DNA of 64,000 nt. It comes from Lama glama. Its lineage: Eukaryota. Made by a program: the position numbers and the translations under genes. The notes under the pieces were generated by a model. That model ran no database searches, had not been told where the DNA came from, and worked only from the letters and a program-made list of their open reading frames with translations. Below are positions 2,851 through 64,000 of the stretch, piece by piece (position 1 is the stretch's first letter; every line of letters begins with the position of its first letter). The DNA is taken from the NCBI GenBank assembly GCA_028534125.1, contig CM052826.1, positions 16,740,001 to 16,804,000 of the forward strand, read 5' to 3'.

Positions 2851-3302
2851 GTGCAGTGGGTTGAATGGTTACCTGCAGAAAGATATATCCACATCCTAAT
2901 CCCCCAAGACCCGTGAACATGATGGTATTTGGATTAAAAAAAAACCAAAACGGTCTTTGCAGATGTAATTAAGGGTTTTAAAATGAGATCATCCTGGATT
3001 ATCTGGGTGGGCTCTAAATCCAATGACAAGTGTTAAAGACACAGACAGAAGAGATAAGGCCCTGTGAAGACAGAAGCAGAGATTGGAGTGCTGCAGCCAC
3101 AAGGGCCAGGTCATGCCAGGAGCNNNNNNNNNNNNNNNNNNNNNNNNNNNNNNNNNNNNNNNNNNNNNNNNNNNNNNNNNNNNNNNNNNNNNNNNNNNNN
3201 NNNNNNNNNNNNNNNNNNNNNNNNNNNNNNNNNNNNNNNNNNNNNNNNNNNNNNNNNNCTCAGTTGTGGCGAAAGGTTACAGCAGTTGTGGGAAACTAAC
3301 AC
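2851..3302 (+). mobile_element. MLT1 (MaLR) LTR, contains N gap
   Basis: ggtctttgcagatgtaattaagg...gagatcatcctggattatctgggtggg...ttacagcag..ggaaactaa. Confidence 0.75.
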
Positions 3303-13122: not shown

Positions 13123-15907
13123 CCTAAGGAATTGATTCAAACATTCTCCAAAAACAGGTGTTGGCTTTGAAGGCAGGTGCAGCCATTGGTGTTTTTTTTG
13201 GATTTTTTTGCGGGGGGCAGTTTCATTGCTAAGGAAAGATTTGCTGAGTGGTCTCTTGCTCAAATAGATGGGGAATACCTCATCCTGTATAGATATTTGT
13301 GACTTATGCCTCCCCAGGGAACACCCTACAGAACTCTGAATCTAGTCTTCCATAAATGGAAAAAAAAAAGGGGGGGGTTCCCTGGTGAAATAAATATGGG
13401 AAACTTGACATCCTGCATCGTTCTTCCTGAAGACTAACAATGACAGTGCTGAGAAGGTCTCCATTAGAGAAATCAGTTTAACTGTTTTATCCATCTCCAC
13501 TTCCCCCTTTTGAGCTCAGCCTTTCAGCTGTCTCATCGCTTTCTTCCCCTGCCCCTGACTGGAAAGGAGGAAGCCTGAAGGCTCTCCACCTCGAGGGGGA
13601 GAAAGCACCAAGTGTGGAGCTTTTAAAGCCCTTTCATGGTGGGAGGGCCCACAAGGGGCCAGCTTTCTGAGCTGGGAAAGCCTAGGCCAGGGTTTCTCAG
13701 TGCCCCCAGTACCACCTGCCTCAGAATCATCCAGGGGACTAGCTCAAACAACAGACTCCAGGGTCATCCCAGACTCTGGCAGTGGGGCCCAGGAACCTGC
13801 ATTTAATCAGCTCCCTGCATAAGGCTGATGAACACAAGAGTCAGAGTTCCCCTTGGTGCCTCTTTCCAAGAGCTTGAGGATCATGTTTGTCTCCTTCCCC
13901 CTCCAGCCCCATATAGCATGGATGTTTGTTGAATGAATAATAATAGCAGCTTCCACTTCTCAGCACTTATTGGGTACTGGGCTGATCACATTGGATTTTT
14001 ACAACAGCCCTATGAATTGGGTGTTTTCATCATCCCCAGGTAACAGATGGGGAAACTGAGACCCAGAGGAAGGTCATTTACATGTTCATGAATTAAGAGA
14101 CAGGCCAGGGTTCCTGTTGAGGTGGGACTGACACTGGGTAGACAGGTGCTGATCATGTGCAGTAACTGGAGCAACTGATCTGGGCCAGAGTTTGGACTCA
14201 GTAGTGCAAAGAGGCCCACAAAGACGGGCCCCTCTAATGCTGGCAGGAAGGAGTTTGAGGAAGGCAGGGGCTGGGGGAAGATGTCTTCTCTGTGTGCATG
14301 GCAGACAGTAGCCTCTTCCCTCTCCAGATGGGCAAGCTCCCCCTGCTGCCTGAGTCCCCAGCAGGCCACCCTTCGATCCTGCCCCGTGGGAAAGCCCAGG
14401 ACAGTTCCTCACCGCCTGGACCAGGGCCCAGTCCTCCTATCTCTGCCCCTCTCTCTATAATGACCTGGCTTGGCAGGGAAGGTGGCCCCAGGGCTCTGCC
14501 AGCTCTACTCACCCCAGCCATCAGAGCCCTGCAGCCCCTCCCAGCCTACCCCAAGCCCAGAGAGCCCACCCATGTGCAGACAGAAGCTCCTGTTTCCTTT
14601 GTAGACAGTTACCCAAAGCAGGGAGGCAGGGCCCAGAGGCTTTTTGTAGTTTTACTCGGAGCCTTGTTAAAGGGCCCTGGGCAATGACGGGAATCAGAGC
14701 CATTTTTAAGTGCTCACGCTGCAGTAGGTGTTGGCCAAGCACTGCCCACATGATCAGACTGCACTCAGCAACCCTGTATTGTAGGCCCGCTGTCTTCCCA
14801 TTTCACAGATGGGGCAGTGGAGGCCCACGGAGAGGAAGCCCTTTGCACAAGTCACACCTAGGAGGTAGCCAAGTTCAAGTCGTGCCCTGACTGGACCAGA
14901 GCTTGTGTCTCACCTGCCCTGCCCGCTGCTGACTTGGCAAGAGGGATGGGGCTTCACAAGAGAGACAGTGTCCCTCACCCAGCACCTTGGGAAAGGAACC
15001 TCAACTTTTTAGCAGCCAGAAAAGCTGCCTCTGCCTGGTCAGGTGGGCCCCGTTCTGAAGTCAGCAGCGGCTGCTGGGCCTGCCCTGTGGCCATGGCCTG
15101 CTCCCAGCCTGGTTACCCCTGGCCCTTCAAGGGCCCTCTCTCTGTGATGAGCTCACATCTGGTATCGCCACCCTTAACTGCCTTCACTTCTGTGGCTGTG
15201 AGCAGCTCAGGGGTTTGTTGGACTCAAAACACCTTCCCGGTGTCTGGCACCCCACTGGGGATGATACTCAGCCAAGAATCCCAGCCCAGATGGTGGCTGT
15301 GCAGGAACTGGCACAGGCTGGCTGGGAGACAGCTTGCCCCATGACTTTCCTTTCCGGCAATTAGCTGACTAGTCAAGTGCTCAGAATGCCCAGGGTTCAG
15401 ACTCAGTCCTGCCACTTCCCTGCTGTGTGGCATGAGGCTAACTCCTTAACCTCTCTGAGTCTCAGCTCCTCCTCTGGCGGACCAAACAGAAACTCAGATG
15501 TGGTTGTTGCAAAGTTTAAAATGAAATAAATGTAAAGAAAGTGCCCAGCCTGGCAGATCCCTCAGGAGAACCGTACTATTTGTACTATTTGTTACCGGGT
15601 GAAAGCCAGAGTTCCCCCCAGCACAGGGATCTCCCACACGCCGGGTGCTGGGAGGACGAGAGCAGGACTCCTGGGCGGGGGTGAGTGGAAGAGGTACAGA
15701 CTAGCCTCAGTTCATGGTTCCCCTGCAGTGTTGGGTTGGTTATATCTTGCCAGCCCTGGGACTTAATTAAGTTACTGATGAACCCGTACGTGTCTCTAGG
15801 GAGCCAGGATCTGTCCCTGGTTTCCTCTGCCTGTAGATTAATTCTTGTTTTTCCTTCTTCTTCTTTTTTTTTCTTTCCCCACCTCCCCTTCTTCTTCCCA
15901 AGCAAGC

Positions 15908-15930
15908 AAAAAAAAAAAAAAAAAAAAAAA
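15908..15930 (+). repeat. A23 mononucleotide tract in RFX1 exon 2 5' UTR
   Basis: 23 consecutive A between the acceptor and the ATG. Confidence 0.9.
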
Positions 15931-15964
15931 GGCCTTATTTATTATCATTTTCCCCACTGTTGGC

Positions 15965-16283
15965 ATGGCAACACAGGCGTACGTTACCGAGCTACAGGCA
16001 GCCCCGCAACCATCCCAGCCGCCACAGGCCCCTCCACAGGCCCAGCCCCAGCCGCCGCCCCCACCCTCAGCAGCACCCCAACCCCCCCAGCCCCCAGCCA
16101 CCGCCGCCACCCCCCAGCCCCAATATGTCACTGAGCTGCAGAACCCCCAGCCCCAGGCACAGGCACCGGGCAGCCAGAAGCAGTATGTGACAGAGCTTCC
16201 GGCCGCCCCCACGCCCTCGCAGCCGGCCGGCGCACCCGCCCCGTCCCCAGCATCCCAGCAGTACATCGTGGTCACCGTCTCTG
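15965..16283 (+). CDS. RFX1: RFX1 exon 2 coding part (exon likely starts 15903)
   Basis: Long pyrimidine tract + AG 15901-15902; [15 protein letters not shown]...QQYIVVTVS; donor G|GTAAGT. Confidence 0.97.
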
Positions 16284-25200: not shown

Positions 25201-28200
25201 CGGGCACGGTGTCGCAGCAGCTGCAAGTCCACAGTGTCCCGCAGAGTGTCCCCGTCACCCAAGAGGTACCAGGCCAAGGCGGGCAGTGGCAGGGGCGAGG
25301 GATCCTGGCCAGGCGGCCTCTGCGTCCTCCTTCAGCTGTCCGTGGGATTTGCAGTAGGGAAGGCCAGTGACAGACAAGCAGATGGGGGTCCAGCCCCACC
25401 TTGCCACCTGGGCCTTTGGCAAGCACCTCTGCTTCTCTCCAGACTATGCATTCTCATCTAAATAATGGCTTCTGCCCTGGGGGCCTGGGGGCCTGGGAGC
25501 AGTGTGGTTGGGGCTGCTGTGAGGATGAGATGCCGTCCTGGTGGAAAGCACCTCGCATTGAACGGGCCCTGGAAATGGCTTCAGAAAACAACCTGAGCCT
25601 CTTTGAGCCCATTTGCCTGGAGAAAACCCCAAGGCCAAGTCTTGGCTCACCCCTAAAGGGCTCAGGGAGAGGCCTCAGCCTCCAAATCCATGCCCAATCT
25701 TCTGCAGAAGGCCTCATTCGAGCTGCCAGCCATGGCGGCCAGAGCAGGTTAAGAAGCAAGGGTTGTCTGTCATCTGGTTGGTAGCACTCAAGTTGAGGGG
25801 TTCCCAGCCCCTTGGAAAACCAGATGAAAGCCACAGACCCTTTCCCTGGAGGAGAGCAGAAACCCCACCCTGGGATTCATAGGTATTCTGCTGCCTGGCC
25901 TCCCAGCCTCCCTCAACCTCTAGACCTAGGTTCAAGACCTGGCTCCATCACTCAGCATCTACCCTCCCCCCAGACTCTGTCCCTCACTCTGTGCCTGAGG
26001 ACGCAGAGTGAGCACAGAAGTGAGGACAGTCCGCATCATGGAGGTGGGGGTGTGAGATAACCCACATAGGGAGCTGGGGTGGAGAGCAGGGACTCACTCT
26101 TTTCTTACCGGGCTGCTGTGAGGCTTACAAGTTCATGTGGGCAGAGGGTGGTGCTTGGGGACAAGTGGGCAGCCATCCTCACCATGGTTACCATATTCTG
26201 ACTCACCTTTCCTTCCCCAGAGGTCTGTGGTCCAGGCCACTCCACAGGTGCCCAAAGCTGGCCCCGTGCAGCAGCTCACAGTGCAAGGGCTCCAGCCAGT
26301 CCATGTGGCTCAAGAGGTGTGTGTCTCCCCCACCTACTTCTGGGCAAACTAGGGCTGGGCCCCGGGCTGGGCTGGGGAGGGGAGAGGTGCAGTCCCTTCA
26401 GGCCGCAGGGAGGGTGTGGAGCTACCCTGAGGGGATTTAGTTGGGTGTGGGGGAGGCAGCTGGAGCCTTCAGAACCGCAGCCTCACCCTGGGCTCCGTGG
26501 GCTGCAGACGCGGTCCTGTAGCCTTCCTCTTTCCCCGCACCTGGCAGTTCAGGGCCCAGGATTTGCTAAGAGATACCGGATTCTCCCCTCCCTGACTCGG
26601 GGTGGGCATCTTCTGGTCGGGTTGCTGCCTGAGCTCAGCNNNNNNNNNNNNNNNNNNNNNNNNNNNNNNNNNNNNNNNNNNNNNNNNNNNNNNNNNNNNN
26701 NNNNNNNNNNNNNNNNNNNNNNNNNNNNNNNNNNNNNNNNNNNNNNNNNNNNNNNNNNNNNNNNNNNNNNNCCACGCCGCCACCGGAGCCGCCGCCCCGG
26801 CCGCCCACGCCCGGGCCCCGGCCGGGCGTGCTGGCCCAGGAGCCACCGCCGCTCCCGCCCGCGTGCAGCGGCGAGGCCCCGCAGCTAGGCAGCCCCGAGC
26901 CGCCGCCGCCCCATTACGAGCTGGGCGCCGAGCAATGGGTGGAGCTGGTGGGTGTGCTGCCCCCGCACCTGCTCCTGCCGCAGCAGAAAGTGGTCCTCGA
27001 GCCACTGCCCGGGCTCCCGGCCCAAGCCAGCCCCGACCAGAGGGTCAGGATCCAGAGAGTCCCCCAGGTGCTAGTGTTCGGCACGGCCGCCACGGCCCTC
27101 AAAGTAGGTGGCGGACGCACGGGCAGGGTGCAAGGGGCGGGCGGGGCGGGATGCGCTGGCCCCGGCCCGTGCCCGGCCCCCGCAGGCCTTGTAGACCCCC
27201 ACCTCCACCCGGCCAGTCTGGTGACCTGCCTCTGATTCCCCTAAAGCGGGCTCCATGTCCCAGGCTCCGCCCCTACAGACTGGGGTGGGGGATGGGGTGG
27301 GGGAATTCAGGCCCCGCCCCTAAGGCTTTGTCTGTAGTTCCAGGTTCTGGCCCACAAATGGGGCCCCACCCCTGGCCCCGACTCCACCCCTAGCATCCTG
27401 TGAACCCCCCCGCACCCCCCCCCGACCCTGTTCATAGGAGTATGTCCCTGATGCAGGCTCCAACTCTGAGGCCTTGTCTGTAGTTCCAGGCATCGACTTT
27501 AGTGACAGCCTTGTCCCAGAACTTGGCTCTGCCCCTGGAGTTCAACTTTCACACTCAACAGTAGGAGTCTGGGGTCCCCTCTGGCCACCTTACCTCAGGC
27601 CCCACCCTTGCTGTCCCCAGCCCAAGCAGAGAGTCTTGGCTTCTCCTGACACAGTTGTGCCTAATTCCCAGCCTGTGGGCCTCTGACCCCTGACCCAGTC
27701 CAGGGTGTTCAGAGAGCCCAGAAGTGCAGCCTTCCAGCTAGGTGTCCCAGCGAACTTAGGCAGCTGCCAGACCTTTAGAAGCAGAGGCAAGGAGTTGGCC
27801 CACCCCTGACCCTGTATACCCTTCCTCCCACACCAGGTGCAGCAGCTCCAGCAGGTGCCAGTCCCACATGTGTACTCCAGCCAAGTGCAGTATGTGGAGG
27901 GCGGCGATGCCAGTTACACGGCCAGCGCCATGTGAGTGGGGGGGAGTGCTGGGGGAGGGGACAGGAGGAGGGGCATGGGTCTGCCCAGGATCCCCCAGGA
28001 CTTGAGGCCTCAGCCCTCAGTGAAGCAGCCAGCCTTCAAGGCCTCAGGTGACAAATCAGATGGTGGGTACTCCCAAACGGCAGCCTGCCACCACCAGGAA
28101 GAGGCAAAACAGAGGGACCCTGGCACGTTGGGAAAAGCATCTCAGCATAGCTTAGGGCTTTGGAGTCAGGTGGGGTGGTTCTTTGCAAAAAAACCCAAAA

Positions 28201-39782: not shown

Positions 39783-42700
39783 CTGCAGGGAAGGATGAGG
39801 ACGGAGCCTTGGAACTTCTGCTCACCCAGGCCTGTCCCCCTAACTTGATATGGGCCCAGAAGGTTCTGGAAGGCAAGCACCCTACTGAGTTATCTTCTGA
39901 CTCCTGCCTACAGCCAGTTAATAAATGTCTGCTGAATGAATGAGTGACTGGCCAGGGCCCCCAGGTGTCACACCTGAGCTGCCTCCCCTCACCCCAATGC
40001 CACAGTGTCCACTAGCACAGCCAACGTGCTCCACCATCCAGCAACACTTAGGAGTGAGCACCTGCTCCGGGCCCAAGCCCCAGGATAAGGACTTCAGTCC
40101 TGACTGTTGTCAGGTCACAGGGCCCACCTTTGTGCAGTGCCTCGTTGGTCATCCTGTTGACATATCGGCCGCTGCTCTCAGGCACCAGCCACTTCATGAC
40201 CATGTCCACACAGCTCTTGCGGTATGAGCTCCAGACGCTGCCGCTGAGAGAGACAGGTGCGCAGCTCTCAAACCAGCCCAACCTGCCCCCAGCCCTGGCC
40301 CCCCCAACCCCAGCCCTGCCTCACCTGGTCTGCCCTTTGACCTCAGTGAGGTCGCCCACGCTGACTGTCACAAAGATGCCTGTGTTGAGGTCCCATGCCA
40401 CCTTGAGGCTGGTGTGATAGGTCTTTGGTCTACAGTGAGGAGGGGTGGTGAGCAGAAGATAAAGGGGGTGGGACCACTTGGTCCCTGAGCTTGAAACCCA
40501 GCTACCCTGAGGGGCTTTCGTCTTTGGAGCAGTAACAAAGTTTTAGGAGCAGGAGAGTCTTCTCCCACCCCACCCCCAGCACTGAGGTGTCTTCAGTGCA
40601 GGACCCTACTGGGCAAGGGTGAGGGCGGGCTCCCTGCCCTCTCACCGGAGCTGGCCTTCCTCGGTGGGGGACGGGAACGCCAGGAGCAGCAGGCCGATGT
40701 TAATGAGGACCTGGTTGGTTTCTGGGCAGACCTGGGTTTGGGGGGTGTGGATGGTGACAGCTATTGAGAAAGCCGCCCAGAGAGGGAGGTCCTGGGCCTG
40801 CCCTGCCCCACCCCTGGGCCCACCTCCAGGATGACGATGTCATAGTCGCTGAAGGAACAGAACTGGTGACCCCAAGTGGCATCATGGCGGATGACCTCGT
40901 TGATGACATACTCGAAGTCCAGCGTGAGCTGTTCCACTGTCAGGTACTGACCCTGTGGAGAGTGGCCAGAGGCTTGCAAGAGGAGGCCTGCACCAACTGC
41001 CAGACCAGCAAGTTCCCCAGGAGCTGCCCCTCGGCCTGCCCGCTGCCAGCACCAACCTGGACAGCAGCTCGCTCCCGCATGGGCCGCAGGTTGCGACCTC
41101 GGAGATCAGTCACCACGAAAGGCAGGGAGATCTTGTCATCCTCAAACTCTGAGGGGGCAGGATGTGGGGGTAGGGATGGCAGTGGGAGGCCTAGAGGCCC
41201 CTCCAGGCCAGCCTCCCACACCTGGGACCCTGCCCGCCGAGTAGGCCCCCTGCTCACCATCCTCTGGCTCCGTCCCCTCGCTGGACCCCAGCACGTAATA
41301 CAGCTTGGTGTAGTTGACATATCCAGGCTCAGGGGCAGGTGCCTCTGTGGCAGTGGGGCTGTCCCGGGGCACTGCCTCCCCACCTGGGGCTAGGGGCTCA
41401 GAGGGCAGGCGGCAGCGGCTGTCTGAGGGCCCTGGGCAGGGGGGTGGCCGGACTTCCTCTGAGGCTCCACCCTTGGCCTCTTTGGCCCTGCGGAAGATGT
41501 CGGCCACAAACTCCTTGGCTTTGGCGATGGCGGGTGAGGGCTCGGGAGCTCCAGAGGGCCGGGCTGGGGCTGCTTCAGGGCAGACGCTGGGGAGGACAGG
41601 GGGCATCTCTGGGCTCTGGGGCCCAGGGGAGCTGGGAGGGGCCGGGGGGTACGTGGTATGGTCATACAGGATTTGGCAGAAGCTGCTATCGCCTGGAACA
41701 TAAAAATAAAAAGTGATGGAGGTGGAAAGGGGTCAACAGATGGGTTCAAGATCAGGACGCTCTCCTGACCTCCTTAACTCTGGAGGGTTCTTAGAAATCT
41801 TCCTTGAGGAGACCCTTCTAGAAGACTTACATATGCTGAGATCAGTCTGAAACACCCAGAAGAGAAAAAGGACTTTTAGACACAAACATGTGTGTGTGTG
41901 CACACATGCACTGACTTGTTCATTCAAACCTTATTCTTGGGCGTCTGCTGTATGCCACACTCAGGTCACAGGAGTGAACAAAACAGACAAAAACCCCTGC
42001 CCTTGGGGAGCTGACAGTCTATGATGATGAAAGATAGAAGCCACATAAGTCTGAGAGTTTACTACACAGCCCTCTGTCCTCCCCAACCTGAGCCAGACCA
42101 GCACAGGCACAGCCTGGCTGAATCCCAAACCTCTGTCTATGACTCCACCTGACGGGGGGCCAGAACCCCTGGGGAATGTATGGTCAGTGTGGAGGACCCC
42201 AACACATTCACCAAGCAGCACCGTGGCTGGGCCCTGGGCTCTGCCTGCCCTGCCTCCTTTGGGCCACCACAAGCAACCCCTGGATAGGAGAACTGTCCTC
42301 CCAGCTCAGAGACTCGAGGCTGAGGCTCAGAGAAACTTGTCCAAGGTCACACTGAGAGATAATGCAAGCCAACCAATGCACTCTTGTCTGCCAGAGTGGC
42401 AGCACTTCCAGAGGGAAGGGGGATGATGTTCGAGTTAAAACTCCCCGTCTGTGTAAATACCCTCCTATGGTGAGATGAGGGTTAAGACACGGGTAACAAT
42501 GCCCCTCACCTGGGCCTTGTGCACACGGCCGGATCTTGTGCCATGTGGTCCTTCCTAACTGGGCAGGGGCCCTCAGCCCCATCCAGGCCTGGCTTGCTGG
42601 GGACTCACAGCATGGCGAGAAGCAAGGCCTTGTCCACGCCGGCACAGGCGGCCAGGGCAGGGGCGGGAGGCCCCTGGCTGGTTCGTGGGCTTAGTTATAT

Positions 42701-53409: not shown

Positions 53410-54160
53410 ACATTAAAAAAATTGTGGTGACATGTATATAACATAAAATTTACCATCTTGGCTTTTTTTAAGTGTACAATTCAGTGGCATTAAGTACATT
53501 TGTATTGTTGTGCAATCATCACCACCTCCATCTGCAGAACTTCTCCATCACTCCAAACAGGACCTCTGTCCTCATTAAACACCTACTCCTAACCTTGTCT
53601 CCCCCAGCCCCTGGCACCCACCATTCTATTTTCTGTCTCTATGAGTTCAAAACTCTAGGGACCTCAAGTAAGTATAATCATACAGTATTTGTCCTTTTGT
53701 GACTGGTTTATTTCACTTCATCNNNNNNNNNNNNNNNNNNNNNNNNNNNNNNNNNNNNNNNNNNNNNNNNNNNNNNNNNNNNNNNNNNNNNNNNNNNNNN
53801 NNNNNNNNNNNNNNNNNNNNNNNNNNNNNNNNNNNNNNNNNNNNNNNNNNNNNNNNNNNNNNNNNNNNNNNNNNNNNNNNNNNNNNNNNNNNNNNNNNNN
53901 NNNNNNNNNNNGGTCAGTTCCTTGCTATGGTTTCTTTGGGTGTATATCCAGAAGTGCAATTGCTGGAACATAATTCTATGTTTAATTTTTTTTTTGAGGA
54001 ACTGCCATACTGTTTTCCACCCCAGCTGTACCATTTTACATTCCTCAAGGTGTGCAAGGTTTGCAATTTCCCTATATCCTTGTTAACACTTGTTACCTTC
54101 TGGGTTTGGGTTTTCTTTTTTTGTTTTTTAATACAAGCTAACCTAATGGGTGAGATCGTT
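53410..54160 (-). mobile_element. L1MB-like fragment, antisense, contains N gap
   Basis: taacataaaatttaccatc...aagtgtacaattcagtggcattaagtacatt. Confidence 0.75.
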
Positions 54161-61741: not shown

Positions 61742-64000
61742 ATGGTAAGGTAGGGCAGGGGAGGGTCTGAGGGTGGGGCCTGCCTGCCCACCCACCCCAC
61801 TGTAGGGATGCTCCTGTTGCCATGGTGACCCAGTGCCCATCTGAGGACACCCTGACCCGTCCCTCAACTCCCAGCGGCTGAGCATATTGCTGCTGCTCCT
61901 GCTGCTGCCTGGCCACCCACCCACCCTCGGCATGGAGGACGCCTCCTTCCCCCACCTAGGGGAGAGCTCGCAGCCCCCGCCCCGGGCCTGCCCCCCACGC
62001 TGCTCCTGTCCCCGAGCTGACACAGTGGACTGCGATGGCCTGGACCTGCGGGTGTTCCCGGACAATATCACCAGGGCAGCTCAGCACCTCTCCCTGCAGG
62101 TGGGGCCTGGGGGTGCAGGGTAGCACCCAGGGGAAGCAGGGAGGAGAATGGGAAGTGCTGGAGTTGAGGGTGTTGGGGCGTGGGGTCCCTGTGCAGGGAT
62201 GAGGCACTGGGCATGTGGGTCTTGGCACTGGTGAAAGCTGGCCTTGAGAGCGCAGGGGACTGTATGTCAGAGGTGAGAGGAGGCGGGGGTACAGATGTTG
62301 GAAGTGGGAGAGGGGCTGAGAGTTTAGGGGTGGATGTCTTGGTGATTAGGAGTTGCTTAGGATTGGTTTGATGGGGCATTTGGGGTCAACTGTAGGGGTG
62401 GATGGGGTGTGGGGGGGCTAATGTCTTTTTGGTTACTGGGCTGTTACTGGATAAAGAGGTAACAAGGCATTTCGGATCGAGTATGGGGTGATGGGGCCTT
62501 GGGGCTCACTGTTTAGGCTGATGGGAAGCTGAGACTCAGAGCTCGGGGTCATCTGTTGAGGGCTCAGGGTCACGGGCGTCAGGGTGTGAGTGCCCCCACC
62601 CTGCCCCACAGAACAACCAGCTCCAGGAGCTCCCCTACAACGAGCTGTCACGCCTCAGTGGTCTGCGGACCCTCAACCTCCACAACAACCTCATCTCCTC
62701 CGAGGGTGAGGGGGACAACGGGAGGCCGCCTCTCCCCAGCACAGTCCCCGCTGCCCTCTCTCTGTGGCTTGGTCTGTGGGCAGCTCTGCGGTAGTTCCCA
62801 GAACTGCCCTTTGCTGAGCAGGATGGAAACTCAGGGGGTGGGGGTGGGAGCTGTGGCTTTTGAGGACAAGGAGGGGCAGTGCTCGGAGGAACCTCTGCCA
62901 GTCCCCGGCTGGATGGGAGCACAGGCTCTCCCCTGCCCTCCCCCACCAGGACTGGGGTCCCCTCACCGCCCACCTCACTCACAGGCCTGCCGGATGAGGC
63001 CTTTGAGTCCCTCACCCAGCTGCAGCACATCTACGTGGCCCACAACAAGGTGAGCCCCCTCCTCACCCCAACTCCTCGAATCCCCTGCCCAGGCCTGGCC
63101 CGGCAGGGGTGCAGCCCAGGAGGGGTGCAGATGGGACAGCGTGGGGCTGGAAGGGGACCACCTGGACCATTGCAGCTGTGTTCCCGCAGCTCTCTGTGGC
63201 TCCCCAATTTCTGCCCCGCTCCCTCCGTGTTGCTGATCTGGCTGCCAATGAAGTGACAGAGATCTTCCCGCTCACCTTTGGGGAGAAGCCGGCTCTCAGG
63301 TAGCCCCTGGCCCAGCCCAGGTCCCCCTGGGGTCTCAGACATGCCTGGGATCACTCCTTACCCTGGGGATCCGAGGGGGATCGTGAGCCCACTCTGCAGG
63401 GATCTGGAGGGGAGACAGGACCCTGGATGCTCTGTCTGGAGAATTCCAGACTGAAGTGGAGGGAGCACACACACACTCACACCCCCACACTGAAGGCAGC
63501 CCTGACCTGGGGTGCAGGGTGGTGGGGAGGCCAGGGCCAGGCTGGTGGCCGGAGCCTGGCTCCCCTCAGGTCCGTGTACCTCCACAACAACCAGCTGAGC
63601 AATGCCGGCCTGCCCCCCGACGCCTTCCGCGGCTCCGAGGCAGTCACCACCCTCAGCCTTTCCAGCAACCGGCTCAGCTATGTGCCGCCCAGCCTGCCGC
63701 CCTCGCTGGAGCGACTCCACCTGCAGGTACCCCTCCTTCACCTCACCACCCCCGTGTCCCCACCTCCTCGGGCCCCCTGCACCTCTCTCCTAGGGGACCC
63801 CTCCACCTCCTCACAATTCCGGCCATAGGAAATGTCTCTCTCCAAGTCTCTTCCCTGTGCATGGGTCATACACAGGTGCTCTCTGAGCAGATGTGCTCAG
63901 GCGAGCTCCTCCTCCCTTACTCTAGAACCCTCCGTGGCTCCCTGCTGCCCTCTATCCTGGACCGTCAGTCTCATTCTCTTCTCCCTTCCCAGGACAACCT
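61742..64000 (+). CDS. PODNL1: Podocan-like 1 (small leucine-rich repeat protein), 5' part, truncated by window end
   Basis: join(61742-61744,61875-62099,62612-62705,62985-63049,63190-63299,63570-63726,63993->64000); M|[13 protein letters not shown] signal peptide, CPPRCSC...VDCDG LRRNT cap, LxxLxLxxN repeats; synteny with DCAF15/RFX1. Confidence 0.94.
61875..62099 (+). CDS. PODNL1: PODNL1 exon (signal peptide + LRRNT)
   Basis: [31 protein letters not shown]...AQHLSLQ. Confidence 0.94.
62612..62705 (+). CDS. PODNL1: PODNL1 LRR exon
   Basis: [31 protein letters not shown]. Confidence 0.94.
62985..63049 (+). CDS. PODNL1: PODNL1 LRR exon
   Basis: [22 protein letters not shown]. Confidence 0.93.
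63190..63299 (+). CDS. PODNL1: PODNL1 LRR exon
   Basis: [37 protein letters not shown]. Confidence 0.93.
63570..63726 (+). CDS. PODNL1: PODNL1 LRR exon
   Basis: [52 protein letters not shown]. Confidence 0.94.

Follow-up and report, generated by a model that had tools for sequence, protein, structure and literature searches.

The 64,000-nucleotide stretch of Lama glama DNA analyzed here (GenBank assembly GCA_028534125.1, contig CM052826.1, positions 16,740,001 to 16,804,000; hereafter the window, whose own numbering is used throughout) carries the RFX1 gene on its + strand, and within intron 7 of this gene lies a CpG island with an open reading frame that stops looking like coding sequence at a 5′ splice site. 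We read this frame as a real, conserved alternative coding exon of RFX1 inside the intron 7 CpG island, and we put the probability of this reading at about 0.55. Its basis is threefold: coding-type composition, a donor at the end of that composition, and conservation of both frame and junction in one felid gene model. The exon would be read on the + strand in the frame of position 26774, would end between 27103 and 27104, and would be spliced in phase 0 to exon 8. The resulting RFX1 protein would have, directly before the VQQLQQ sequence that opens exon 8, a Pro-rich segment of 110 residues or more that is either additional or alternative and includes a conserved PPHY motif. If the exon is real, we consider a first exon about twice as likely as a cassette exon.

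Coding-type composition and the splice donor

The exons of RFX1 were recognized by translation. Exon 2, with the start methionine, lies at about 15.97 kb (15965-16270, + strand) and five further coding exons follow, the last of which ends at 26316. Exon 1, presumably non-coding, would lie in the CpG island at 8-9.6 kb, which makes the intron between 26316 and 27837 intron 7; the initial annotation, which had named that intron, is right if exon 1 is non-coding. Exon 7 (RSVVQ...VHVAQE, 26221-26316, + strand) has both ends in phase 0 and the donor GAG/GTGTGT directly after 26316, while exon 8 (VQQLQQ..., 27837-27931, + strand) begins in phase 0, as had been stated, behind the acceptor ...CACACCAG/GTGCAG.

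Between these two exons, positions 26774-27103 translate into 110 codons that are free of stops and in phase with exon 8 at 27837, and the 110-residue peptide initially reported after the assembly gap was recovered exactly. The composition tests and database searches described below cover 26810-27103 on the + strand, the 98 searchable codons of the candidate exon; the dozen codons 5′ of 26810 share the same open frame. The peptide is rich in Pro, Leu, Val and Gln. It also contains the PPxY-type motif PPHY (within PPPPHY) that had been noted before, which is present in the camelid peptide and in the felid model alike. PPxY motifs are ligands of WW domains, and at the level of the motif PPHY is a putative WW ligand.

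Openness of the frame is by itself uninformative. Of 5000 first-order Markov simulations of the stretch, 24% had no stop in the candidate frame and 58% had none in one or more of the + frames. The neighboring frame that starts at 26773 is open for 206 codons, and the candidate frame itself continues for 43 codons past the donor, 153 codons in all. A phase-0 GT is likewise cheap in this frame because every Val codon supplies one: of the 23 GT dinucleotides listed in 26810-27300, 15 are in phase 0. A chance open frame was nevertheless rejected as the whole story, since both the periodicity and the codon usage of the stretch are of exon grade.

The GC content of the candidate stretch by codon position is 0.845, 0.555 and 0.891. 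We scored periodicity as (GC1+GC3)/2 - GC2 in every 183-nucleotide (nt) window and phase of the 64 kb, 61,159 windows altogether, and the candidate gave the top peak of them all (0.48 at 26897), higher than any real exon. The ten separate peaks that rank next, with scores from 0.42 to 0.33, were all judged by eye to be coding exons; eight of these belong to RFX1, and the other two are an antisense exon at 40803, probably part of DCAF15, and an exon of a leucine-rich-repeat gene at 63574. Peaks from non-coding sequence begin at about 0.30. When the score is followed in 60-nt steps, values of 0.47-0.62 over 26900-26960 give way to 0.0 and then -0.08 around the donor (27080-27110).

Codon usage gives the same picture. 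Log-odds trained on eight in-frame pieces of RFX1 exons from the window yield +0.69 bits per codon for 26810-27103 in the candidate frame, against -0.79 and -0.57 when the other two are read; the second half of the candidate reaches +0.84, while the open stretch beyond the donor scores -0.43. Real RFX1 exons, scored with each left out of the training in turn, range from 0.42 to 0.98. As controls, 58 GC-rich windows from introns, each scored on both strands and represented by the best of its three frames, reached a maximum of 0.125, and 130 windows taken from the three other CpG islands of the window reached a maximum of 0.197. The composition is thus of the coding type far beyond chance, in one frame only, and it ends at the donor; the frame originally proposed as coding is precisely the one that carries this signal, and only as far as the splice site.

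That candidate 5′ splice site, CTCAAA followed by GTAGGTGGC (27104-27112, + strand, cut between 27103 and 27104), is the phase-0 donor AAA/GTAGGT of the initial annotation, found at the predicted place, and the coding signal ends there. It agrees with the donor consensus MAG/GTRAGT at seven of nine positions, which makes it as good as the donor of exon 7 (7/9); the donor of exon 8 agrees at eight of nine.

Two other readings of the stretch were considered and rejected. Tandem Repeats Finder (TRF) found 0 arrays in 26810-27103, which speaks against a decayed triplet repeat as the source of the periodicity, and the codon-aligned frame of the minus strand holds stops, which speaks against an antisense gene.

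Conservation in a felid gene model

We searched the 98-residue peptide against named public proteins of 0.55-1.75 times the query length in amino acids (aa), a range that full-length RFX1 isoforms exceed, which left three scored candidates after 47 sample-only ones had been excluded before scoring. One of the three passed: P0001, an NCBI model named "MHC class II regulatory factor RFX1-like, partial" from Herpailurus yagouaroundi (jaguarundi), 124 aa long, with an E value of 2.3e-43. Its alignment with the camelid exon contains 82 identical residues of 91 and 0 gaps, and the final 26 exon residues before the junction are all identical. In P0001 the exon runs directly into exon 8 at the same K/V junction (...TAATALK/VQQLQQ...), and at its other end the model extends 5′ of the candidate acceptor site at 26840. 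The frame is therefore kept in the one other species compared. Because the exon is kept in the felid model, the frame, the position of the donor and the neighborhood of exon 8 predate the carnivore/camelid split. Both the earlier suggestion that automated models may already contain the exon and the claim that it joins exon 8 in frame are borne out by this model.

The felid model resembles the candidate in carrying the exon joined to exon 8 at the predicted junction. It differs in being a 124-aa fragment on a contig of 2154 bases with an open N-terminus, and it is silent on the 5′ end of the exon and on its expression. A second search with P0001 itself as the query (candidates of 68-217 aa, 60 sample-only ones excluded) returned only P0001; the exclusion of sample-only candidates before scoring weakens these blank results of the protein searches. 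The RFX1_trans_act family (PF04589) has no profile match in the new peptide, and the PF04589 label that P0001 bears most likely stems from its exon 8 part.

Within the window the peptide has no second copy, the best tblastn and blastn matches (E values of 0.56 and 0.026) being short low-complexity pieces. A match to the SpoU-type methyltransferase TARBP1 (PDB 2ha8_A; E value of 1.2 over 26 residues, 34-59, around AEQW..PP) was taken as chance. The QYVTEL motif occurs three times in RFX1 exon 2, VQYVEGG occurs in exon 8, and EQWVELVG follows PPPHY in the candidate exon (26930-26950). BLASTP of the candidate peptide against P0001 also gave a second alignment, with the exon 8 part (6/14 residues, E value of 0.17). 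This resemblance may be chance or a short motif shared within the N-terminal sequence of RFX1.

The intron 7 CpG island and competing readings

CpG islands are defined by a length of at least 200 base pairs (bp), a GC content of at least 50% and an observed/expected (o/e) CpG ratio of at least 0.6. The segment 26810-27103 is an island by this definition, with 294 bp, a GC content of 0.748, 29 CpG and an o/e ratio of 0.71. The CpG richness reported from the start is greatest at its 5′ side, where the GC content is 0.88 and the o/e ratio 0.97 over the 100 bases that directly follow the N run. Along the intron the ratio moves from 0.32 just before the N run to 0.97 just after it, stays at 0.94 across the donor and sinks to 0.13 at 27301-27836; the 3′ tail of the island within the intron (27104-27300) has a GC content of 0.736 and an o/e ratio of 0.53. 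Flanking exons and intron show ratios of 0.0-0.45 per 100 bases, with about 0.1-0.2 in the setting of exons 7 and 8. Three overlapping GGGCGG boxes lie at 27135-27149, and the stretch holds seven GC boxes overall. A 40-nt direct repeat, 83% identical, is found 3′ of the island in the same intron (27305-27344 and 27451-27490, spaced by 146 nt).

Intragenic, or orphan, CpG-island promoters can give alternative first exons, and first exons of this kind run from island to exon to donor and then into decaying island, whereas exons in the gene body are normally CpG-poor. The llama stretch resembles orphan CpG-island promoters in having an unmethylated-looking island within the gene body, followed by a donor and then by decaying CpG. 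Since the o/e ratio approaches 1 on the 5′ side and declines across the donor, and since GC boxes are present, a first exon is favored over a cassette. The acceptor-like AG dinucleotides that follow the N run have weak pyrimidine tracts (about 0.5), and this too was counted for a first exon. The N run itself (26640-26771) conceals the 5′ edge of the island and possibly the start of the exon, be it an ATG, a transcription start site or an acceptor. As an alternative first exon, the candidate would be transcribed from the island itself with its ATG inside the N run. The resulting isoform would lose the product of exons 2-7, namely the PQ-rich N-terminus and presumably much of the Gln-rich activation domain, and would keep the DNA-binding, B, C, dimerization and C-terminal domains.

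Alternative starts in this family are on record. The available part of a FANTOM5-based study gives three human RFX1 start sites, two of them canonical and one testis-specific (PMC5838959). The testis-specific site, pC@RFX1, and the RFX4 variants resemble the proposed first exon in that alternative starts alter the N-terminus and keep DNA binding and dimerization; pC@RFX1 differs in shortening the region upstream of the activation domain, and it thus lies further 5′ than intron 7 (PMC5838959). The human gene also has a likely counterpart of the island. According to the available parts of three papers, intron 7 of human RFX1 holds an isolated CpG island with reported enhancer activity that is hypermethylated in glioma and breast cancer, and phosphorylated STAT3 (pSTAT3) binds this intron in T cells treated with interleukin-6 (IL-6) (PMC4625569, PMC5805701, PMC8106159). 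All three cite Ohashi et al. 2004 (Oncogene) for the island, again in their available parts (PMC5805701, PMC8106159, PMC4625569). The human assay fragment has about 30 CpG in 273 bp, as given in the available part of one of them (PMC5805701), against 29 CpG in the 294 readable exon bases of the camelid. We regard the camelid stretch as the probable counterpart of the human island, which it resembles in being an isolated CpG island, with GC boxes, in the same gene and the same intron; the assignment goes by this position.

Words sampled from the exon also occur in public sequencing runs. At least half of the 32 sampled words were held by 20 of the 24 rows listed, from nine studies: 14 rows held a share of 0.81, two held 0.78, one held 0.75 and three held 0.59, and the four added rows held none. 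By their records four of the word-holding runs are RNA (metatranscriptomic, from a single study), ten are guessed to be RNA and six are of unstated kind. This pattern fits a transcribed exon with a fixed boundary, and it fits pre-mRNA, DNA or filtered words equally well.

Several results weigh against a coding exon. The papers on the human island, in their available parts, treat it purely as a methylation-sensitive enhancer and mention no exon, frame or transcript start (PMC4625569, PMC5805701, PMC8106159), our literature search, one part of it poorly aimed, turned up no account of an exon within intron 7 of RFX1, and the available part of the FANTOM5-based study names no RFX1 start site there (PMC5838959). 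The 98 readable codons contain no in-frame ATG, the sole ATG (26935) being out of frame, and the 92 exon residues of P0001 contain no Met. The occurrence of exon words in sequencing runs could mean pre-mRNA or DNA, most of the rows being only guessed to be RNA. Comparative support comes from one automated partial model on a contig of 2154 bases. Gnomon partial models can be ab initio; P0001 may be an extension of this kind and would then speak for conservation rather than expression. The felid was compared at the protein level, where constraint on the protein and constraint on the DNA are inseparable. In the two protein searches no other named protein of 54-217 aa had the exon, and the 98-aa peptide matched 0 Pfam families at E values up to 10 and had no Atlas relative, the best score (0.82) being at chance level. 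AlphaFold2, run on an alignment of two rows, gave a mean predicted local distance difference test (pLDDT) of 46 and a predicted template modeling score (pTM) of 0.17, which is non-discriminating. Such a lack of a known family, a relative and a confident fold would suit a Pro-rich, disordered region of the sort that makes up the remaining N-terminal half of RFX1, but it proves nothing.

A rival account, which we regard as a serious possibility although not the one we prefer, is that the intron 7 island is regulatory only, kept for factor binding and untranslated, so that the open frame, its GT and the automated felid model would be coincidental. The llama stretch has the composition of a CpG island and seven GC boxes, its likely human counterpart has reported enhancer activity, is hypermethylated in glioma and breast cancer and lies in an intron bound by pSTAT3, in the available parts of the papers (PMC4625569, PMC5805701, PMC8106159), and the available part of the start-site study is silent on intron 7 (PMC5838959). 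An open frame of this length is expected by chance, and neither an in-frame ATG nor a clear acceptor is seen in the readable part; the felid model, being a Gnomon partial model, could be ab initio. A non-coding island, however, should lack the top periodicity of the window and exon-grade codon usage in one frame that ends at a good donor, and the other three islands reach at most 0.197 where the candidate reaches 0.69. The STAT motif TTCNNNGAA has 0 matches in the readable intron (26317-26639 and 26810-27836), the human site sequences not having been compared with it. Enhancer and exon roles are, moreover, not mutually exclusive, and the two may coexist in one stretch.

The exon, if real, could instead be an internal cassette. 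Exon 7 would then be spliced at 26316 either to an acceptor that precedes or lies within the N run or to the AG at 26838-26839, with exon 8 following, and the activation domain would receive an insert of 88 to about 185 residues; we consider this unlikely. It agrees with the end of exon 7, the start of exon 8 and the end of the candidate exon all being in phase 0 and with the readable exon having no Met. The phase-0 AG at 26838-26839 would start an exon at 26840 of 264 nt, or 88 codons. Upstream of the gap, the CAG at 26636-26638 that had first been put forward is present, and the judgment that it is a weak acceptor stands: its pyrimidine tract has a fraction of 0.60, and better sites lie at 26546-26552 (0.76-0.80). 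There a strong pyrimidine-rich tract (26523-26552, + strand) has two acceptor-like AGs with pyrimidine fractions of 0.80 and 0.76, which would start the exon at 26548 or 26553; a cassette form might use it as its 3′ splice site. The constant share of 0.81 in 14 runs would also suit a fixed 5′ boundary about 60 bases into the query, and filtered words or a variant would explain it equally well. Internal exons are normally CpG-poor, however, as exons 7 and 8 are (o/e ratio of about 0.1-0.2), whereas the candidate island reaches 0.97. The AGs after the gap have pyrimidine fractions of about 0.5, and P0001 continues 5′ of 26840. The frame from 26553, although it reaches the N run without a stop, carries little coding signal (0.17) and, at the nominal length of that run, which is an estimate, does not match the frame of the candidate exon. 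Very improbable, finally, is an artefact or relic, either a contig misjoin next to the gap or a defunct piece of a different gene copied into the intron. The stretch does adjoin an N run, and its presence in many small sequencing runs might reflect some other, more abundant source. What counts against such an origin is the N-free continuity through to exon 8; the felid contig, which also has the exon and exon 8 together and puts the origin of this arrangement before the split of the orders; the lack of any parent in Pfam, PDB or the Atlas, where the best match was the TARBP1 methyltransferase (E value of 1.2); and the lack of a second copy in the window.

An alternative coding exon would matter for how RFX1 acts. 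RFX1 is both an activator and a repressor, with its activation domain N-terminal and its repression domain C-terminal, as described in the available part of one paper (PMC8106159), and if an isoform had the activation domain replaced or interrupted, the sign of RFX1 action on its targets would change. One extension of the first-exon reading is doubtful but is stated here for its consequences, namely that the intron 7 enhancer island is itself an alternative promoter with a coding first exon, conserved at least across Laurasiatheria. The isoform from such a promoter would have a Pro-rich head with a PPxY motif and intact DNA-binding, dimerization and repression parts, and it might have a built-in bias toward repression or be degraded differently. 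If this were true, the effect of island methylation in glioma, breast cancer and lupus T cells would be to switch isoforms and not merely to tune an enhancer. In the available parts of the literature, methylation of the intron 7 region is associated with silencing of RFX1 in both glioma and breast cancer, and the region with IL-6/STAT3 control in lupus T cells (PMC4625569, PMC5805701, PMC8106159); if the island is also an exon or a promoter, these methylation results need to be re-read by isoform.

Other features of the window

The remaining coding exons of RFX1 were also recognized by translation on the + strand. Between exon 2 and exon 7 they lie at about 23.08, 23.4, 24.17 and 25.2 kb. Downstream of exon 8 there is a Gly-rich exon at 30.7-31.07 kb, the exons for the DNA-binding domain begin at 32.5 kb, and the last exon, ending ...ALPSS, is at about 37.87 kb.

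Eight N runs of 132-189 bases each interrupt the window, the first at 3124 and the last at 53911, and several of them lie in or beside CpG-rich sequence, as at the 5′ island of RFX1, the intron 7 island and an island 3′ of RFX1. GC-rich exons that adjoin N runs may be under-annotated in this assembly, and the candidate exon would be a case in which a reference annotation has overlooked a GC-rich exon beside assembly gaps.

In a search for structured RNA, Rfam mir-3099 matched 27191-27308 with 19.6 bits against a gathering score of 95 (E value of 0.64), and this match was taken as chance. A scan for sigma-70 promoters and terminators, which is inapplicable to a mammal, gave nothing. Just 5′ of the RFX1 start codon, at about 15890-15960, there is an A-rich run (KKKKKKKK in one frame) preceded by a T-rich run; the A-rich run may represent the tail of a retroposon within the 5′ untranslated region or an intron.

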